A stretch of DNA of 49,500 nt, filler included, from Bipalium vagum (GCA_037834085.1; 3 parts of 3 records of this genome joined end to end with filler, not necessarily neighbours in it), one strand, 5' to 3'; positions 4,397 to 16,850 are shown, counted from the first letter of the whole stretch. Translations and numbers: made by a program. Notes: generated by a model from the sequence alone, not told the origin.

Positions 4397-4491
4397 ATTC
4401 AAAATATGTCATCAATCATGATAAAACAGGTGGTGTACTTAAAAGAATTTGAAGAGGCTTCACTAAAGTACTGCACATTTTTGTATATATA
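4397..4491 (+). promoter_or_regulatory. Proximal promoter of paralog A (TATA box 4484-4491 plus motifs shared with paralog B)
   Basis: TTCAAA.TATGTCAT, AACAGGT.G, TTGAAGAGG..TCAC and TTTT.GTATATATA occur in the same order upstream of both paralogs. Confidence 0.65.
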
Positions 4492-4519: not shown

Positions 4520-6536
4520 ATGTTTTATAAAATGCTTAATTACCATTTGAAAGTATTCTTTCTCTTCCTGCTCACGTTTATGGTGATTGAAAGTCTAACG
4601 CACGACCACAAATTACATCACTCCATTACAAAATGTGACAGAGATTGGGCCAGGGCTGACCTAAAATGTGACAAGAAAAGATTCACTCTACAAAAGCAAT
4701 GTAAAAGCGAAAGAAAAGAAGCTCATGAGAAATACGAAAGACGTATGCGAGCAAAGTGTGGTACTGATACCGTTGAACAATGTATCAAAATCGAAGATGA
4801 AATTCATGACGATTTGTCCAAAGATCTGGCATCCATCAGAGAACGTTGTTTCTGGAAATTGGAAAACATTGAAAAAAAGTGCAACAAGTTATTTGAAAGC
4901 ATTGAGCACAGGTGCAACGCTTTGTATGAAAGGTACGGAAAATGTGATCGAATCCGGACTCATAAAATCTTCAAGCATCGAAATCACAAACAGGACAACC
5001 ATAGCCATGAGGCTGATGGCAACAAGTATGATCATTTAAATAATAATATTAATAATTATCATAATCATGATCATTTAAGTAACTTATATATTGATAAAAA
5101 TGAAAAATATAAAGAAAAATTTCCGAATTACAATTTTGATAAATACAAAATAAATTTTACAAATGGCGATTTTTGGAAATATTTCGATAAAGACGGAAAA
5201 TTTAAATTTGNNNNNNNNNNNNNNNNNNNNNNNNNNNNNNNNNNNNNNNNNNNNNNNNNNNNNNNNNNNNNNNNNNNNNNNNNNNNNNNNNNNNNNNNNN
5301 NNNNNNNNNNATTTTGATAAATACAAAATAAATTTTACAAATGGCGATTTTTGGAAATTTTTCGATAAAGATGGAAAATTTAAATTTAATAAATATGACC
5401 TCTCCGATTTTTGGAAATTTGTCGACAAAAATGGAAAATTTAAATATGATAAATACCACTTCCCCGATTTCGGTTTTGATAAATACAAAATAAATTTTAC
5501 AAATGGCGATTTTTGGAAATATTTCGATAAAGACGGAAAATTTAAATTTGGTAAATACGACCTCTCCGATTTTTGGAAATTTTTCGATAAAAATGGAAAT
5601 TTTAAATTCAATAAATTCGATTTTCCCAATTTCGATTTTGATAAATACAAAATAAATTTTACAAATGGCGATTTTTGGAAATTTTTCGATAAAGATGGAA
5701 AATTTAAATTTGGTAAATACGACCTCTCCGATTTTTGGAAATTTTTCGATAAAGATGGAAAGTTTGAATATAATAAATTCGATTTTCCCAATTTCGATTT
5801 TGATAAATACAAAATAAATTTTACAAATGGCGATTTTTGGAAATATTTCGATAAAGATGAAAAATTTAAATATAATAAATACGACCTCTCCGATTTTTGG
5901 AAATTTTTCGATAAAGATGGAAAGTTTAAATATGATAAATACCACCTCCCTGATTTCGATTTCGATAAATATAAAGTAAATTTTACAAACAATTGGTTAA
6001 ATAATTTTGATGTTGAGAAATTTGGAAATTATAATTTTAATAAATATAAATTCCCAAAATTTGATTTTAATAAATATAAATTCCCAAAATTTGATTTTAA
6101 TAAATATAAATTCCCAAAATTTGATTTTAATAAATATAAATTCCCAAAATTTGATTTTAATAATTATAAATTCCCAAAATTTAATTTTAATAAATATAAA
6201 TTCCCAAAATTTAATTTTGATAAATATAAATTCCCAATTTTTAATTTTGATAAATATAAATTTCCAAAATATAATTTTAATAAATATAAATTCCCAAATT
6301 TTAATTTTAATAAAGTTAAAGTGGATAAAAATGAAAAGTTTCATCATGGTTATGATAATAAATTTGATTATATTAATAATGATTACTTAAATGGTCACAA
6401 TAACAATTTTGGCAAGTTTAATAACTTCGAAAAGAACAGTGATTTCCAGTTTAGCAAAGTCAAGGATTCGTTCACATTCAATAACGATAATGATCTATTT
6501 TCTGATAATGATTTCAAAAGGGAAAAACGTTCCTGA
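4520..6536 (+). CDS. Secreted Cys-rich / aromatic-Lys-Asp tandem-repeat protein, paralog A (intronless, spans N gap)
   Basis: ORFs 4520-5317 and 5163-6536 join across a 100-N gap inside a 162-bp repeat array. Hydrophobic signal peptide, 9 Cys, His-rich linker, 54-aa and 10-aa repeats; collinear with paralog B; AATAAA at 6564-6569. Second ATG (4532) aligns with the start of paralog B. Confidence 0.88.
5138..5990 (+). repeat. 162-bp (54-aa) coding tandem repeat, at least 5 units
   Basis: GATAAATA(C/T)AAA unit starts at 5138, 5316, 5478, 5640, 5802, 5964 (162-bp period after the gap). Confidence 0.92.
5211..5310. other. Assembly gap within the repeat array
   Basis: 100 N; repeat phase implies a true size of 84+162k bp. 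Confidence 0.95.
6030..6314 (+). repeat. 30-bp (10-aa FNKYKFPKFD) coding tandem repeat, ~9 units
   Basis: TTTAATAAATATAAATTCCCAAAATTTGAT repeated. Confidence 0.92.
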
Positions 6537-7958
6537 ACATTGTACATTATACTTGTCATGACGAATAAAAATTATATGTGATTGTTTGTATTTTTTAATA
6601 GTTTTGGTGATTAAAGTATTCAACTTGAAAAAAGATTATAGAACAATAGTTCAATTTTTATTAATTTAATGGAACTATTTCTATGAGTCAATTATTTAAA
6701 ATCCTTCTTTTTATAATTTTATCATCAAAATTATATTTAGTATTTCGTTTCAATTTGTTAAGTTTGTCTTTATTTTCATAATAATTGTTAAAATGACCAA
6801 CATATGTACTTAATTTTTAATTTCGAAATTTTTCAAGTTTTCCTATTTCTTAATTTTTAAATTTTTTTTCTTTTTCCCGAATGTTTCAATGTGTGTGATT
6901 TATAATTTTTTCATGAAAATTTCAAGATTTTAAATTTTACTTGGTCTTTTAACACTAATTTTAAAATTTTTATTAAAAAAAATTTTAAATCTTTTAATCA
7001 ATATAATGTATCAAAAAGTATTCATCAATATAATACAACACTTGATTTCAATTAACACTAAATTTTGATTCAATTTCGTGTCATGTATAATATAATTTTA
7101 GATCTTAAAAACGTACAAATAAAATAATCAAATAAATACAAACTTTTATAGTGAGATGGATAAAAAATAATTTCAATAGAAACTTGCATTAATAAACCAT
7201 TGATAATCTCAAAATCAATATTAAATATTAAATAATCGAAATAAAATAGTGATAAACTTTAATTGTGAATCTGTGGTACAGCAATCAGAACTTTAAAAGA
7301 TTTATTGCCTAATATATGTTGTAAAAATATGAAAAGGATATGGCATATTATTTTAATGATTAACAAATTATTCTGCCAATATATTTTGATATTTTTTGAA
7401 ATAAAATAATTTTAATGATCCAAAAATCCTTTTAAAATAATTAATAGTCAGAAAAATAGTTTAAAATTTAATGATGAAATTTAAAACACTAAAATATCGA
7501 TTATTACATTTAAGATCTAAAAATCATAATATAAATTTAACGCAGGCTTATTAATAATTTTCAACATAATTCTGCAATATATTTTAACTCATAAAAAAAT
7601 AACTTCAATTTTTGTAAAAATAATTATAAAATAAAATCCATTTTTAAAATCTTAAATTGAATCAGTTAAATTTTAAAAGAAAAAAGTTTTTTACAAATTA
7701 TCTAGATGAAATTAAAAAAATAACAATTCATTATTTTAAAATAAATAAGATATTTAAAATTGAAATAATATTAACTTCTAGATATGAAAGAAATTATGTA
7801 TATTGTCATTTTACATTTTATTCAAAACCAATTATAATAATAAATGAAAAAGCACAATGTAACTTTAATAATTTTAAAGTTAAATAGATATTTTGGAAGA
7901 AAAAATTTTCAGGATGTGGATGGAATTTTAAATATTAAATACAATTCAAATAGATTTA

Positions 7959-8184
7959 TTGGGTTGTTCGGAAAGTTACTTCGCTTCTTTATACCTATCT
8001 TTAAATCTTAATGTAAAGTAGTTGAGTCATTTTAAAGGTTGGGATAATCAAATTGCCTGGTAGTTCGCAGATAGTCTCGGACCAAAAGGGACAATACATC
8101 ATTGATTAAAATATTTATTATTAAAAAAAACTTTTGGTCTTACTTTTTACTAGAAAATGCGAAGTGACTTTCCGAAAAATCGAA
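7959..8184. mobile_element. Internally deleted mariner / MITE
   Basis: TA-flanked TIRs TTGGGTTGTTCGGAAAGTTACTTCGC ... GCGAAGTGACTTTCCGAAAAATCGAA (4 mismatches); internal remnant DQKGQYIID* typical of a mariner C-terminus. Confidence 0.75.
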
Positions 8185-9572
8185 TAAACTCATACAAACT
8201 TTTAGTGAGATCATAATATATATAATCACCATGTAAATAAACTTATATGCAAATACTTAAAATAACATTGGATAAATTTAATTATTTATTATTATAGAAT
8301 ATGCAAAATCAATAATGTATAAATTTATTTATCATGATTAAGTTCTGATTGTAAATTAAATAAAAATCATTATATAAGTTATAAAACTCATTTACAAATA
8401 GTATTTTTAAAAAAATTATATTAAATAACTTTTGAAAATTTAAAATTTATGTAAAAATAAATAATACAAAAACTTATTAAACGATTCTGATGTCTTTAAA
8501 TTTAAAGACAAAAGAGGTAATGATACATTACAATTAAATTTTAAAAAATCAAAAATATTTTTTTAGAAAAAACAGAAGAAATTAAAATAAAAAAATAGAA
8601 TTAAAGGTATAAATAAAAATATAAAAATTTGAATTGAAGAATATGATAAAGTTTAGGATTAAAATGAAATAATTAAAATAGAAAATAGATGTATAAAATC
8701 GGCTAAACATAATAGTTATCTATATTAACAAGAAAAATTTCATTAACCTCTTTTGATGATATCAGACTAATAAATAATAATGAAATAAATAATTTTTCTG
8801 GTGGATATAAAACAAAGTGTATTAACTTCAATAATTGAGCTTATAAATTGAAACTTAAATGTGGTACAATTTATATATTATATTATAATGCTAAATTAAC
8901 ATTTCATTTGTATTATTAAATTTCTAAAAAAACATAATTTTGTTGGGATCTAAAGAAAGAGATGTCTCAGCACCCGCTGTACCCTTAAAAAATTCAAAAA
9001 CAGAGATCACAAAGGAGTCAGAACCACAACAACCAACCAAGAGCTGATGGACAGTGATCCCCCACATCTCATTATTGACATGTAACAATTTATTAATTTT
9101 AGTGAATGTGCATGAAAAAGCCTTATTAGGCTTATTTTCATTTTTTATGGACTCCATATGTAATTTTATGTGTCACTTTATATTTTATCAAAAATAATAA
9201 TATTTAAATTATACATTTGTTTTTAATTAAAATAAATAAATATAAGAATAAAATAAATTGTGGGTTGAAGTTAATTAAAACTTAACCCATAAAATGAATT
9301 AAAAATATTTAAAATGAGTGATAATGGTTCAAAAAATGAAACTTACTATAAATACATTAATATGAGTGAATATTAATATGCAGGTGAATATATTTCGTAA
9401 GTTCTATAATATAAGAACTTTCCTAAAATATCAAAAACCGACATATTACTCTATTAATGGAAAGTTTTATTTTAAACCAATCAAGAGATCAGGAATGTGA
9501 AAATCAGGAGTATATAAACTCTTGGTTTTCGCATTCAATAGACACTCTAACTTCACATCGACAAGTTAGCGC

Positions 9573-9783
9573 TACTAGTAAAAGATAATATTAAATATGC
9601 TTCGGGTATTTAAAAAACATATCGATCTCTTTTGAGCAAAATTTAAATAATTAAATAGTAATCTACAATTCAGAGCAATACTCTACAATGTAGATTGCTA
9701 TTTAATTATTTAAATTTTGCTCAAAAGAGATCGATATGTTTTTTAAATACCCGAAGCATATTTAATATTATCTTTTACTAGTA
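9573..9783. repeat. 211-bp near-perfect palindrome (95-bp arms, 1 mismatch, 21-nt loop)
   Basis: 9573-9667 is the reverse complement of 9689-9783 except T9659/G9697. Confidence 0.95.
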
Positions 9784-10694
9784 ATATTAAAAAATACTCT
9801 GCAAATACTCTGCAATAAATTCTTTTTATTATATTTCTTTGTTTCCATTTTTGTTTTCTTCACATTTTTCCTATATAGAAATAAAATCAATACTTATTAG
9901 TTTCTAAAATAAATAAATCCAAAATTAGATAATAATTAGAAACTGATAAATGCGACCACTACCTAACCTCACATTGAAAATTTAAAATTTCAGTAAGGCA
10001 TGGTTGTATTTAAAATTTTTAGTTACTTTAAAAAGTCATTTAAAAGAATTTTTAATTAACATTTAAATTTGATTTTCATCTCATTAAACAAAACAGAATG
10101 GAATTAAACCTTTTAACCATAAGAAATCAGTAATAAAATAGATATTAATGTTTTTAATGAACTACCTGGAAATGATATAATATATAGAAAACAATAAAGC
10201 ATAAACAGTTTTATTAATATAAAAATTGAAAAATCAATTATTAAGTATTTAATCAAAAAAATATTCAATATCTTTTATTATAACAACTAAAAAAGTCATA
10301 TTATTTTTAAATTAAAAATTCTATTAATATTAGATCTAGATTTTAATTATGAATTAGTTTTAATATATTAACTTTAAATATCTTCTGAAGTTTGGTTAAT
10401 GTTTCATAATATCCCATTATTTAAAATATGAAATCACGTGGGATACTTATTTTTCTTCAGACTACTCGTGCCAAGAAATTAAGAGTAATATTATAAGTAA
10501 ACATGTTCCATCTTATGAAGGAATCTTAAATTATAAATAGGCACACTATCATTACTTAAATTTTTCGAATTATCAAAACACTTAAGCTGTCTTTGATTAT
10601 TCAGTAGTACGAATTTTAAAAAATAACATTTTTAAAACAACACAACAATTCATTAATACTTTTTATTCGTTATAACAAGTATAATGTACAATGT

Positions 10695-11843
10695 TCAGGA
10701 ATGCTTTCCCCTTTTGAAATCATTATCAGCAAATATATCATTATTGTCATTGAATGTGAACGAATCCTTGACTTTGTTAAACTGGAAATCATTGTTCTTT
10801 TCGAAGTTATTAAACTTGTCAAAATTGTTATTCTGACCATTTAAGTAATCATTATTAATATAATCAAATTTATTATCATAACCATGATCAAATTTTTCAT
10901 ATTTATCAACATTACCATTATCAAAGTCTGAATTTTTATCAAAATTAAAATTGCCCGTAAAATCGCCATTTGTAAAATTTACTTTATATTTATCGAAATC
11001 AAAATCGGGGAAATCGTATTTAGTATATTTAAATTTTCCATCTTTATCAAAATATTTCCAAAAATCGCCGTTTGTGAAATTTATTTTATATTTATCGTAA
11101 TCGAAATCGGGGAGGTCGTATTCATTATATTTAAATTTTCCATCTTTATCGAAATATTTCCAAAAATCGCCATTTGTGAAATTTATTTTATATTTATCAA
11201 AATCGATATCGGGGAGGTCGTATTTATTATATTTAAATTTTCCATCTTTATCGAAATAAGAAACACTTAAGGGATCATGATCATGATAATTAATATGATT
11301 TAAATGATCTTCTGAAGCATAATCAACATTACTGTGATAATCGTCATAATCAGTATAATCAATCTTATTACGGTATTTCTCACGTATCTCACTTTGGTGC
11401 TTGAATATTTTATGAGTACGGATTCGATCACATTTTCCATATTTTTCGTATTGAGCTTCACACCTCTCATCAAGACTTTTAAACAGCCAGTCACATTTGT
11501 TATCAATGTTTTCAAATTTCGAGAAGCAATGCTTTCGGATGGATTCCAGATCCTTGAGCAAATCGCCATATATTTCATCTTCGATTTTTATGCATTGTTC
11601 GACAGTTTTAGTACCACATTCCACATTCATACGTCTTTCATATCTTTCATGGGCTTCTTCTCTGTCACCTTGGCACTTCTTGTGTAAAGTAAATCTTTTC
11701 TTGTCACACTTTATGTCAGCTCTTGCCCAGTCCCTGTCGCACTTTGTAAGAGAATGGTATAATTTGTGGTTATGCTTCTGACTTTCAATGGCCACAACTA
11801 TGAACAGAAATAGGGAGAATATTTTCAAATGAAAACTAAACAT
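10695..11843 (-). CDS. Secreted Cys-rich / aromatic-Lys-Asp tandem-repeat protein, paralog B (382 aa, intronless)
   Basis: Complete ORF; signal peptide; same 9-Cys spacing as paralog A; ~3 copies of a 34-aa (102-bp) repeat; conserved tail and 3'UTR with AATAAA (10662-10667 on - strand). Confidence 0.92.
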   Translation of the reverse strand: MFSFHLKIFSLFLFIVVAIESQKHNHKLYHSLTKCDRDWARADIKCDKKRFTLHKKCQGDREEAHERYERRMNVECGTKTVEQCIKIEDEIYGDLLKDLESIRKHCFSKFENIDNKCDWLFKSLDERCEAQYEKYGKCDRIRTHKIFKHQSEIREKYRNKIDYTDYDDYHSNVDYASEDHLNHINYHDHDPLSVSYFDKDGKFKYNKYDLPDIDFDKYKINFTNGDFWKYFDKDGKFKYNEYDLPDFDYDKYKINFTNGDFWKYFDKDGKFKYTKYDFPDFDFDKYKVNFTNGDFTGNFNFDKNSDFDNGNVDKYEKFDHGYDNKFDYINNDYLNGQNNNFDKFNNFEKNNDFQFNKVKDSFTFNDNNDIFADNDFKRGKHS

Positions 11844-11882
11844 CGTTAAAAATTATTTATTTCTTGTTAGTACCACTGCACT

Positions 11883-11990
11883 TATATATACCAAAAAGTA
11901 GTGGATTTTGTGAGACCTCTTCAATTCTTCTTATATGTAAGTAGGCGACCTGTTGCTCGTTGATTTTGAAGTTATGACATACTTTGAATA
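11883..11990 (-). promoter_or_regulatory. Proximal promoter of paralog B (TATA 11883-11890)
   Basis: Same ordered motif set as upstream of paralog A; TATA ~40 nt from the ATG. Confidence 0.65.
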
Positions 11991-12749: not shown

Positions 12750-13345
12750 CAATCGACATGGCAGCATATGAGCTATCAAAAGAAATTTTGAAGTATTCCA
12801 TGCCTTAATTATTCAATTTGAAGAAAACTGCAGGTGAAAGACAACTGCTCTTACTTCTTGTCAAGACACCTTTAAATGATGGTTTGACCGATTTAGAAAA
12901 GATGATCGTAACTTTAGAAAAGTAACGCTGAAATCAACAGAAATAAATTTATAGCTCGAAATTGGAAGCCATCTTAGAAGAGGATAATATCCAAACATAG
13001 AAACAGCTAGTTAAGCGGTTGAATAATTCTCAACAAGTCATTTGCGACCATCTATATGTAAAATGGGAAAGTTTTAAGTTGAAGGAAAATGATTTTCACA
13101 TAGATTGAATGAGAAAATGGAGAAACCAAAAATAATTTGCGAAATCTGATTAAGAAAGTAATGTTTACATCGCGTAATAAAAGACGAAAAAATAATGGAT
13201 TTACTTTGATAATTGTAAACGCAAAAGATCGTGGGTTTATCCGGAACAAATAACCACTTCCATTGCAAAGTGCAATATTCATGAACAGAAAGCTTTATTA
13301 TACATCTGGTGGGACCAGAGAAGGGTAGTCTTCTGTGAGATAGTA
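12750..13345 (+). mobile_element. Decayed mariner transposase
   Basis: Fragments WFDRFRKDD and NIHEQKALLYIWWDQRRVVFCE (mariner LCVWWD motif); many stops and frameshifts. Confidence 0.7.
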
Positions 13346-14759
13346 ATCATTATTAGTAGATGGTAATCAATATGCATTAAAATTACTGAAAATGAAGAAA
13401 CTGAAGAATCTTTAATAGAACTTATAAATAATGGGTCAATGCTTATACAAATGGAGATTGCTCCGGTTTTTATAGTGATATGGCTTCATACATTCCAAAA
13501 GGTATGAGCAAGGAACTTATTAATGAATAAATGTATTTCTGTTTAAATTTTTTTAACGTTACGAACATATACCTGTTGTAATTAACATGTTTTCTAAATA
13601 GATTTTTACGGTGTCAAAATAGAATTTTACAATGTCAAAAAAACTTAACCTTGACAAAATCGAGGTGGAAATGGTGTAATAACATTTGAATATTTTTAAA
13701 AAGTTTTTCAATTAAAAAAGAACATAAAAAAAGAAAGATAATTCACAAAATCTCATCTGTAACTTTTACTTAGTCCATACTTGTTTCCCACTAGACTCAA
13801 ATCTTCTTTGGGATCTATACGTGATTCTTGGTGCAACTGATAATAAAATCGATAAAAAATAATTTATAACCACTCGCAAGAAATAGTAGTCAATTTCACT
13901 TCTTTAATGGTTTCACAACTAAACAAATCTTTTGCTATTAGGGTCTTATCTTCTAATTGATTTTTTAGTAGTCCGACCAATCAGATCGCGTACTCATCAA
14001 ATTAAGAAAAATTATTTCTTTTTAGAGAAACTATAAAATTATCAGAATGAGTAATTATCGACTCTAGGATTAGTCTAATTTTAGAACTATTCGGGGCATT
14101 AATTCTATTGATAAATATTGCCACAAGATATTATTCTCTTCTCAATTTTTTGTTGATTATTAGGTATTATGATCTTGGAAACCGGATAATACTATTAATT
14201 CTGATTGATATCAAAAACAAACAATTGAGCTGAACTAATGTTTGATTACCAAAGTTCCAAAATGGGCCAAGAAGCATAGTAAAATCATTTCCTATTGTCG
14301 TAATCTGACTGAGGAAATCATCTCCTTTTTATAGTAAATTCAATAACCTGCCGGTCATTCCAGTTGTTGGTGGTTAAAAATTAGGTTTTGAAAGACCTGT
14401 TTTATTTTTAAGGAGAATTTTAGGTTATTTCAAGGTACTTCAGGTAATTTAATTTCATGAAAAAATGATTTATTCCCTTAAATATATCGGAGAACAATTA
14501 CTTGGGAGAACAATTATCCGTTGATTCTCATAAAATAAATTGTACCTAATTAATTTATTATTATTATTAGTTAATTCTCGTTGTTATTATTATTGGTTTA
14601 TTATTTAATAAATTATTATTATTTTTTTTATTATTATTAGTAGTAATCAGAAAAAACAATTTATTCAAAATTCACCATAAGAATGTCAATAATTTCATAT
14701 TTAATCATAAATCAAGATGAAACAACTGACCCACATATGAAAACATGGTCAAACATTTT

Positions 14760-16419: not shown

Positions 16420-16850
16420 GTTGACAGAGTCACTGACCCAGTTTAGTTTTACATCTGATTTGACCTGGTTTAATTTTTAAAATGAGCCAAATCTTAGATC
16501 TCAATTTGTCAGAAAGCATTTGAATCAACTGAAGGATACGTTTCCATTGCCATTAAATCACAATTGAGAATATTAGGTACGGAGCATAAGACCATACCAA
16601 AACTTTCAAATATATTATTTATCGAAGTTCTTCCGTATCCATCTTACAGTCCCGATGCCGCACCATCTGACTATGAACTTTTTCACTCAATACAAGGGGA
16701 GCTGTCACATTGTCCTTAGATCTCTGAAACCCAGTCTAAACGGGAAAAGTTCAACTCTGTACAGGAATATGAAAAATACATCGTTCAATTTTCTACAGAA
16801 TAAATCAAAAAATTTCTCAGTCATGGAACAATGACTCAAGTGAAAAATAG
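16420..16850 (+). mobile_element. Decayed mariner transposase 3' fragment
   Basis: IEVLPYPSYSPDAAPSDYELFHSIQGEL matches the HPPYSPDLAPSDY motif. Confidence 0.75.

Follow-up and report, generated by a model that had tools for sequence, protein, structure and literature searches.

A convergent gene pair in the flatworm Bipalium vagum encodes predicted secreted proteins with an old nine-cysteine domain and private repeat tails

A pair of convergent paralogous genes, referred to here as gene A (plus strand) and gene B (minus strand), is present in a 49,500-nucleotide stretch of DNA from Bipalium vagum (GCA_037834085.1). This stretch, the window, consists of three parts from three records of the assembly joined end to end with filler, and its GC content ranges from about 17 to 37%. 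The 3' ends of the two genes are separated by 4.16 kb, and reading either gene requires no intron. An earlier note had described two intronless, tail-to-tail paralogs, each composed of a signal peptide, a domain with nine cysteines, a linker, repeats and a conserved tail. Both the arrangement and the architecture hold: the two open reading frames (ORFs) are present and convergent, and the parts are recovered by translation, alignment, Tandem Repeats Finder and composition, with the signal peptide recognized by inspection (Table 1). The N-terminal halves of the two proteins are 59% identical (E 7e-94), and the repeats and tail can also be aligned (E 6e-51). The signal-peptide-like starts have a Lys-containing n-region, 12-14 hydrophobic residues and I-E-S at positions -3 to -1. 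The linker that follows the Cys domain is rich in Asp, Tyr, His, Ser and Asn in gene B (18, 13, 11, 11 and 9%) and in Asn, Lys, Asp, His and Tyr in gene A (20, 16, 12, 9 and 9%). Pfam gave nothing above cut-off for the three protein pieces of A and B, and an Rfam scan of the window gave no match.

Gene A is interrupted by an assembly gap. Its 5' part runs from 4520 to the gap (5211-5310), and a second ORF in another frame runs from 5313 to a TGA at 6534-6536, so that the protein has a minimum length of at least 230 + 407 amino acids (aa), the parts on either side of the gap. Because the same repeat peptide is encoded on both flanks (FDKYKINFTNGDFWK...FDKDGKFKF on the 5' side, with the motif repeated on the 3' side), the gap is placed inside the tandem array, a typical spot for an assembly break. 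At the nominal length of 100 N the flanks are out of frame by one base (5313 - 4520 = 793); since the gap length is an estimate, this offset decides nothing. Contigs from a public sequencing run (X1) tile positions 5901-11900 without differences, at a single-copy depth of about 20-30 over both genes. One X1 contig joins 11123 to 11226 and thereby skips exactly one in-frame 34-aa (102-bp) unit of gene B, which is either an allelic length variant or a short-read collapse of the repeat.

The Cys domain was described in the earlier note as an orphan, but it belongs to a family with at least 15 loci in this genome and a homolog in Schmidtea mediterranea. The genome searches covered the 440-Mb assembly of 272,664 contigs. 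A six-frame search with gene B found six further complete Cys-domain paralogs on other contigs, which makes eight close paralogs in which the nine Cys are invariant. Three of the six consist of a signal peptide and the domain alone (146-161 aa), two of about 200 aa have short tails rich in Asn, Asp and His, and one of 360 aa has a long, unrelated tail rich in Asn, Asp, His and Lys. Profile and reciprocal searches added the distant members L020, L021, L022, L030/L031, C241794 and C239459. The relatives that the note had proposed to look for were thus found for the Cys domain, whereas the repeat module and tail occur nowhere else in the assembly.

Outside this genome, the eight-member profile was run exhaustively, as a hidden Markov model, against 1.84 billion representative proteins and gave four matches only. 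The best is a 152-aa environmental sequence (E 1.5e-41). The named one is X1.D.D8.3 of Schmidtea mediterranea (P0002; AHD24757.1 / UniProt V9XQR7), with E 6.2e-7 against the 1.84 billion sequences; in the reverse search it matched genes A and B at E 4e-5 to 7e-5. The remaining two are unnamed, so that three of the four matches are environmental or unnamed sequences (P0001, P0003 and P0004). All four outside proteins are like A and B in having a signal-peptide-like start, nine Cys and the invariant Asp and Tyr; they are 141-166 aa long, with a Cys spacing of 11/11/22/8/22/11/11/9-10. Unlike A and B, X1.D.D8.3 has no linker, repeats or tail. In an alignment of 14 sequences, nine Cys columns are common, eight of them invariant and the ninth kept in 13 of 14, and one Asp and one Tyr are shared by all. 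A search with this alignment recovered P0001 and P0002 again and nothing else, a homolog search with full-length gene B gave no match, an ESM Atlas search with the Cys domain gave no usable match, and a literature search by the name X1.D.D8.3 found no paper.

Annotated parasitic-flatworm proteomes are included in UniRef. Since no parasitic-flatworm protein matches the eight-member profile among the 1.84 billion representatives, the family appears to be confined to free-living flatworms. By their profile match and their Cys framework with 11-residue spacing, A and B are members of a flatworm-restricted multigene family of small proteins for which secretion is predicted. Two of the distant loci, L030 (G000:C192216) and L031 (G000:C220796), are near-identical open frames of 148 codons, or about 144 aa counted from the first Met, and represent either a very recent duplication or haplotypes left uncollapsed. 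Judged by eye, their identity to the Logan-derived P0003 is about 55%.

The core of the family spans about 115 residues and is rich in Lys, Arg, Glu and Asp (K 14.7%); the Cys domain is basic (pI 8.5-9.0). For gene B, the AlphaFold2 model consists of two long helices, residues 2-76 (which include the signal peptide) and 81-135, with a short turn between them. The predicted local distance difference test score (pLDDT) is 85.5 when the family alignment is supplied and about 85 from the single sequence. The nine Cys of gene B are at residues 35, 46, 57, 76, 84, 106, 117, 128 and 138, with spacings of 11, 11, 19, 8, 22, 11, 11 and 10. Two residues i and j of an antiparallel hairpin lie opposite one another if the sum i + j stays constant along it, and 35 + 128, 46 + 117 and 57 + 106 each sum to 163; residues 76 and 84 flank the turn. 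This fits a disulfide ladder with rungs C35-C128, C46-C117, C57-C106 and C76-C84, and it leaves the invariant C138 without a partner. The distant paralogs L020 and L022 have 12 Cys with near-perfect 11-residue spacing, enough for six rungs, and the nine-Cys members lack precisely the fifth and eighth Cys of this 12-Cys archetype. A paired loss of this kind is what a ladder would lead one to expect, and it therefore supports the pairing.

The HMMER and Foldseek checks that had been suggested for the Cys domain matched no characterized family. Foldseek against the PDB gave no specific match (E above 0.4), a wide VIA-align search gave generic long helical hairpins and coiled coils (best Z 10.7) and no relative, and a sequence-profile search of the PDB likewise gave no relative (best E 0.06). 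A homodimer prediction of the Cys domain scored 0.14, below the mark, and speaks neither for nor against dimerization. Known disulfide-stabilized helical hairpins, such as plant alpha-hairpinins and scorpion CS-alpha/alpha toxins, have about 30-40 residues, two disulfides and CxxxC motifs. They are alike in being secreted and in having two antiparallel helices stapled by inter-helix disulfides, whereas the helices of the A/B family would be about 55 residues long, with four to six rungs at 11-residue spacing. A 243-bp contig (L023, G000:C130301:1-243, minus strand) consists wholly of a 33-bp tandem repeat with an 11-residue unit of the type EEIGNxCNRIQ. It has one Cys per unit, the hendecad Cys period of the ladder domain, and a weak match to the family profile (E 0.002); it could represent a proto-repeat or else an expansion of the ladder.

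Genes A and B are mosaics of an old and a young half. DNA identity is 73% in the 5' module, from 11 nucleotides (nt) upstream of the ATG through the Cys domain, and rises to 86-93% in the repeats and 89% in the tail plus the first 60 nt of the 3' untranslated region (UTR). In the Cys domain the synonymous divergence (dS) is 1.4-1.6 and the nonsynonymous divergence (dN) 0.15, a dN/dS ratio (omega) of about 0.1. These values indicate an old duplication and strong purifying selection on the Cys domain. In the 79 codons of the tail, dS is 0.14, dN 0.098 and omega 0.70, which makes the repeats and tail about ten times younger than the Cys domain in the comparison of A and B. This difference in dS, together with a similarity that reaches into the 3'UTR, indicates recent gene conversion rather than constraint: the 3' half, including 60 nt of the 3'UTR, was most simply homogenized by gene conversion between the inverted copies. 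Since the tail is similar through recent homogenization and evolves near neutrality, its conservation is no evidence of a functional terminal domain. Among repeat units, the ratio of nonsynonymous to synonymous differences (pN/pS) is 0.33-0.37 for the 54-aa and 34-aa units (0.37 for the 54-aa unit of gene A) and about 1.0 for the 10-aa units. The pair is an example of how a private low-complexity repeat tail can be added to a conserved secreted module where the genome is AT-rich, and of how inverted copies can be held alike in such tails through gene conversion.

The repeats and tail are composed mainly of Phe (17-23%), Lys (16-21%), Asp (14-19%) and Asn (13-16%), with 8-9% Tyr and 4-6% Gly; the repeats are 31-38% aromatic. 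Each 54-aa unit of gene A has one NFT sequon and two DFWK-FDKDGKF motifs. AlphaFold2 predicts residues 136-382 of gene B to be disordered (pLDDT 22-40), with faint beta-hairpins at each YFDKDGKFKY motif. The C-terminal halves differ in charge: that of gene A is net basic (+24 over the two arrays; pI 8.9 for the 54-aa and 9.9 for the 10-aa units), and that of gene B is net acidic (pI 4.6-4.9). Choline-binding-type repeats were considered for the aromatic-x-FD-x-DG motif and rejected, as the Pfam profile for choline/cell-wall-binding repeats (CW_binding_1) gave no match at E up to 1. A dibasic site lies six residues from the C-terminus of both proteins (DFKRGKHS in B, 10710-10715; DFKREKRS in A, 6519-6524) and is a possible convertase site.

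The two genes also have promoter features in common. The TATA boxes are about 30-50 nt 5' of the ATG (about 30 nt in gene A), at an equal distance from it in all eight close paralogs, and about 20 nt further 5' A and B have TTGAAGAGGYYTCAC in common. The composite of this element and the TATA box has two sites only in the 440-Mb assembly, upstream of A and of B; 0.01 matches would be expected in the window by chance. Further upstream blocks are shared to about -190. Because these blocks are shared despite saturated synonymous sites, they point to co-regulation of A and B. At the other end, an AATAAA follows about 28 nt past the stop codon in both genes.

The best overall explanation, which we regard as about evenly poised, is that A and B are an old pair of Cys-ladder hairpin proteins with private repeat tails that serve as granule cargo or matrix. 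By analogy with planarian PROG proteins, their likeliest role would be in a regulated secretion of the epidermis or of glands, as its cargo or matrix. PROG-1 and PROG-2 are markers of early epidermal progeny in which a signal peptide is the sole recognized motif (PMC4507787, PMC5750089, bioRxiv 10.1101/179986). The PROG family averages 179 aa, with 10-19% Lys, a few conserved Cys and Asp, and a coiled coil and internal repeats by SMART; it has at least 24 divergent, tandemly arrayed paralogs and no homologs in Schistosoma, Echinococcus or Macrostomum, nor outside flatworms (PMC4507787, PMC5750089, bioRxiv 10.1101/179986). PROG-2-5 protein is a cargo of epidermal 'Hyman vesicles' (PMC4507787, PMC5750089, bioRxiv 10.1101/179986) and has been reported as precursor and mature forms (bioRxiv 10.1101/179986). 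As described, PROG proteins resemble the A/B family in their signal peptide, high Lys content, conserved Cys and Asp and many divergent paralogs. Their size is near that of the paralogs of 146-200 aa, whereas A and B, through the repeat module, exceed it by a factor of two to more than four. PROG-type proteins serve as lineage markers in planarian stem-cell research and are among the most widely used there. If the two are the same or sister families, the Cys-ladder hairpin would provide the first structural hypothesis for PROG, with four to six inter-helix disulfides spaced 11 residues apart.

In the proposed mechanism, the A and B proteins would enter the endoplasmic reticulum, where the hairpin would be oxidized to a stiff rod about 8 nm long, and the spare Cys could allow covalent dimers. 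A gland cell or a cell of the epidermal lineage would then pack the proteins in granules for regulated secretion, as for PROG in Hyman vesicles. The co-regulated, aromatic-rich tails of opposite charge might help to condense the cargo. They may act on each other or on polyanionic mucus components and form a gel or coat after release. The tails are a reasonable candidate for a natural two-component coacervate, to be taken as a lead and not a discovery. What is new here is a pair of predicted Cys-ladder hairpin proteins with private, homogenized and oppositely charged repeat tails; the hairpin family itself is flatworm-specific and little known.

Several points weigh against the granule reading. 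The signal peptides of A and B are predicted by inspection. The continuity of gene A across the gap, in a frame taken from its flanks, is plausible but unproven. The disulfide pairing comes from sequence arithmetic and a predicted fold. The closest named homolog, X1.D.D8.3, is just 21-27% identical to A and B and itself uncharacterized. Membership of the A/B family in the PROG family, for which we see a roughly even chance, draws on published descriptions and not on alignment; the signal-peptide-like start, the Lys content and the invariant Cys and Asp are seen here, and their positions may or may not coincide with those in PROG. The run search found the locus in one public DNA run and in no RNA run. 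Finally, an omega of 0.7 in the tail and a pN/pS of about 1 in the 10-aa array indicate little constraint, and the repeats may add little function.

This last point leads to the alternative that the Cys hairpin alone is functional. The tails would then be largely neutral, AT-rich low-complexity sequence that grew by replication slippage and unequal exchange, that the C-terminus tolerates and that gene conversion between the inverted copies keeps similar. We consider this unlikely. In its favor, the GC content of the repeats and tail is 22-25%, near the 20% of the spacer, as opposed to 36-37% in the Cys domain, and codons made only or mostly of A and T specify Phe, Lys, Asn, Asp and Tyr. Within the arrays the opposite strand and further frames are likewise open, so that ORF length there is no evidence of coding. 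Three paralogs (L003, L004 and L005) have unrelated Asn/Asp/His-rich tails of very different lengths. On the other side, the 34-aa and 54-aa units retain moderate constraint, the NFT sequon and the DKDGK turn are kept in every unit, and in both genes the frame runs intact through the unique tail to the stop, followed by the conserved AATAAA. These features argue against pure noise.

An extension of the granule reading, which we also hold to be improbable, would see in the hendecad disulfide ladder on an alpha-hairpin of 55+55 residues an extracellular fold class of a new kind, which would define a flatworm granule superfamily and possibly account for the structure of PROG. In this pair the ladder would be a rigid, covalently dimerizing head for co-regulated, oppositely charged aromatic tails that coacervate into a secreted material such as a rhabdite or mucus matrix, an adhesive or a cocoon component.

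According to the earlier note, the pair may encode precursors of a sclerotized or cemented secretion (cocoon, eggshell, adhesive or silk-like fiber) with cation-pi or beta assembly and cross-links through His and Tyr. A genuine biomaterial role of this kind is possible but quite doubtful and at present unsupported. The aromatic and Lys content of the repeats, the weak beta-hairpins, the His-rich linker and the moderate constraint on the longer units are in its favor, as is a repeat number that may vary, with one contig one unit short. Composition and the opposite charges of the tails would be compatible with coacervation or cross-linking, which is speculative. The silk-like argument of the note is weakened, however. 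In silk and cement block copolymers the C-terminal domain is conserved by selection, but the tail here is homogenized and near neutral. They also have a long selected repetitive core; here the repeat module is confined to one locus, has a GC content close to that of the spacer, is predicted to be disordered, is moderately constrained in the 34-aa and 54-aa units but close to neutral in the 10-aa array, and is short, with about 100 aa of repeats in B. The N-terminal domain, moreover, occurs in many short paralogs that lack repeats and is no dedicated assembly terminus, and the excess of Phe over Tyr leaves a modest capacity for cross-linking of the 3,4-dihydroxyphenylalanine (DOPA) type.

Comparison with known materials gives a mixed picture. 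Flatworm temporary-adhesion proteins (Mlig/Mile/Tmed ap1-ap3) are likewise secreted, combine Lys-rich low-complexity repeats with Cys-rich modules and are poorly conserved between flatworm taxa; in contrast to A and B, they have 1,700-14,800 aa, EGF, vWD and TSP domains and Gly/Arg/Lys repeats (PMC9229212). They have neither the helical Cys ladder nor Phe/Asp-rich repeats. Sandcastle-worm cement and mussel foot proteins form oppositely charged cement or coacervate protein pairs, and by functional analogy A (basic) and B (acidic) resemble them in their aromatic and Lys-rich repeats, whereas Phe dominates in A and B and no DOPA or phosphoserine chemistry is evident. Eggshell (vitelline) precursors are dominated by Gly and Tyr (DOPA) and are expressed in vitellocytes. 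The eggshell precursors Schistosoma p14/p48 and Fasciola vpB were rejected as counterparts on composition, as Phe, Lys, Asp and Asn prevail in A and B over Gly and Tyr.

A defensive role, by analogy with stapled cationic hairpins that act as antimicrobials or predator-deterrent toxins from epidermal granules, is very improbable: the hairpin is basic, predicted to be secreted and part of a multigene family that diversifies fast between paralogs, and epidermal rhabdoid granules have been proposed to be repellent (bioRxiv 10.1101/179986), but the domain has 3-4 times the length of the helical-hairpin toxins known so far, gave no specific structural match (E above 0.4 with Foldseek, Z at most 10.7 with VIA-align) and, with an omega of 0.1, is unlike an arms-race gene.

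Table 1. Features of the gene A and gene B locus, in positions of the window
Feature	Position	Strand	Basis or remark
Gene A core promoter: upstream element TTGAAGAGGCTTCAC (4449-4463) and TATA box GTATATATA (4483-4491)	4449-4491	+	
Gene A	4520-6536	+	ORF translation; interrupted by N gap
Gene A signal-peptide-like N-terminus, aa 1-25	4520-4594	+	Translation; hydrophobic core aligns with all paralogs; by inspection
Gene A nine-Cys predicted helical-hairpin domain, aa 26-150	4595-4969	+	Alignment; omega about 0.1 against gene B
Gene A His/Asn/Asp/Lys-rich linker	4970-5134	+	Composition
Gene A first repeat unit, truncated by assembly gap	5135-5210	+	Translation, A/B alignment
Assembly gap (N), within repeat array	5211-5310		Same repeat encoded on either flank
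Gene A 162-bp (54-aa) tandem repeats, 4.2 copies 3' of gap	5311-5989	+	Tandem Repeats Finder
Gene A 30-bp (10-aa, KFDFNKYKFP-type) tandem repeats, 9.6 copies, net charge +18	6026-6314	+	Tandem Repeats Finder
Gene A C-terminal tail and TGA stop	6315-6536	+	A/B alignment
Gene A AATAAA polyadenylation signal, in 3'UTR stretch common to gene B	6564-6569	+	3'UTR alignment
Spacer between 3' ends, 4.16 kb	6537-10694		No ORF with family match
Gene B AATAAA polyadenylation signal	10662-10667	-	3'UTR alignment
Gene B	10695-11843	-	Uninterrupted 382-aa ORF
Gene B stop codon and C-terminal tail, aa 299-382, net acidic	10695-10949	-	Translation, A/B alignment
Gene B 102-bp (34-aa) repeats, 2.9 copies	10950-11258	-	Tandem Repeats Finder (call: 10959-11258)
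Gene B Asp/Tyr/His/Ser/Asn-rich linker, aa 147-195	11259-11405	-	Composition
Gene B nine-Cys predicted helical-hairpin domain, aa 22-146	11406-11780	-	Alignment, AlphaFold2 pLDDT 85.5
Gene B signal-peptide-like N-terminus, aa 1-21	11781-11843	-	Translation, paralog alignment
Gene B core promoter: TTGAAGAGGTCTCAC (11924-11910) and TATA box (11891-11883)	11883-11924	-	

Dispersed repeats and transposase relics lie around the gene pair. In the spacer, the stretch at about 9100-9700 has a summed contig depth of 1e4-5e4, against about 25 for single-copy DNA, and looks like a very high-copy element of the miniature inverted-repeat transposable element type. It is overlapped by a near-perfect palindrome at 9573-9783, whose 103-nt arms are 96% complementary and enclose a loop of 5 nt. 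Another dispersed repeat of high copy number, at about 7900-8300, has a summed depth of about 4,000 and no ORF with a family match. Beyond gene B lies a relic of a mariner-type transposase (13196-13363, plus strand; Pfam Transposase_1, E 4.7e-10), and 3.2 kb further a second mariner-type relic (16600-16716, plus strand) shows a YSPD..PSDY.LF motif and no significant Pfam match; they are probably either two relics or one disrupted element.

The mitochondrial gene COX1 was also inspected in the assembly. On contig C253947 it has AAA at three Asn positions that are universally conserved, and reads TGA as Trp and AGR as Ser, as in the echinoderm/flatworm mitochondrial code. Taken with the Schmidtea homolog, this code points to a rhabditophoran flatworm, and the identity of just 21-27% to the Schmidtea protein suggests that the two animals are not closely related. 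The COX1 sequences of the assembly (L024-L027 and others) include at least three distinct types that look intact, as well as many degenerate copies with TAA or TAG stops, and L026 is clearly distinct from the flatworm-code L024. This variety hints at mitochondrial DNA inserted in the nucleus, and perhaps at DNA from more than one organism.

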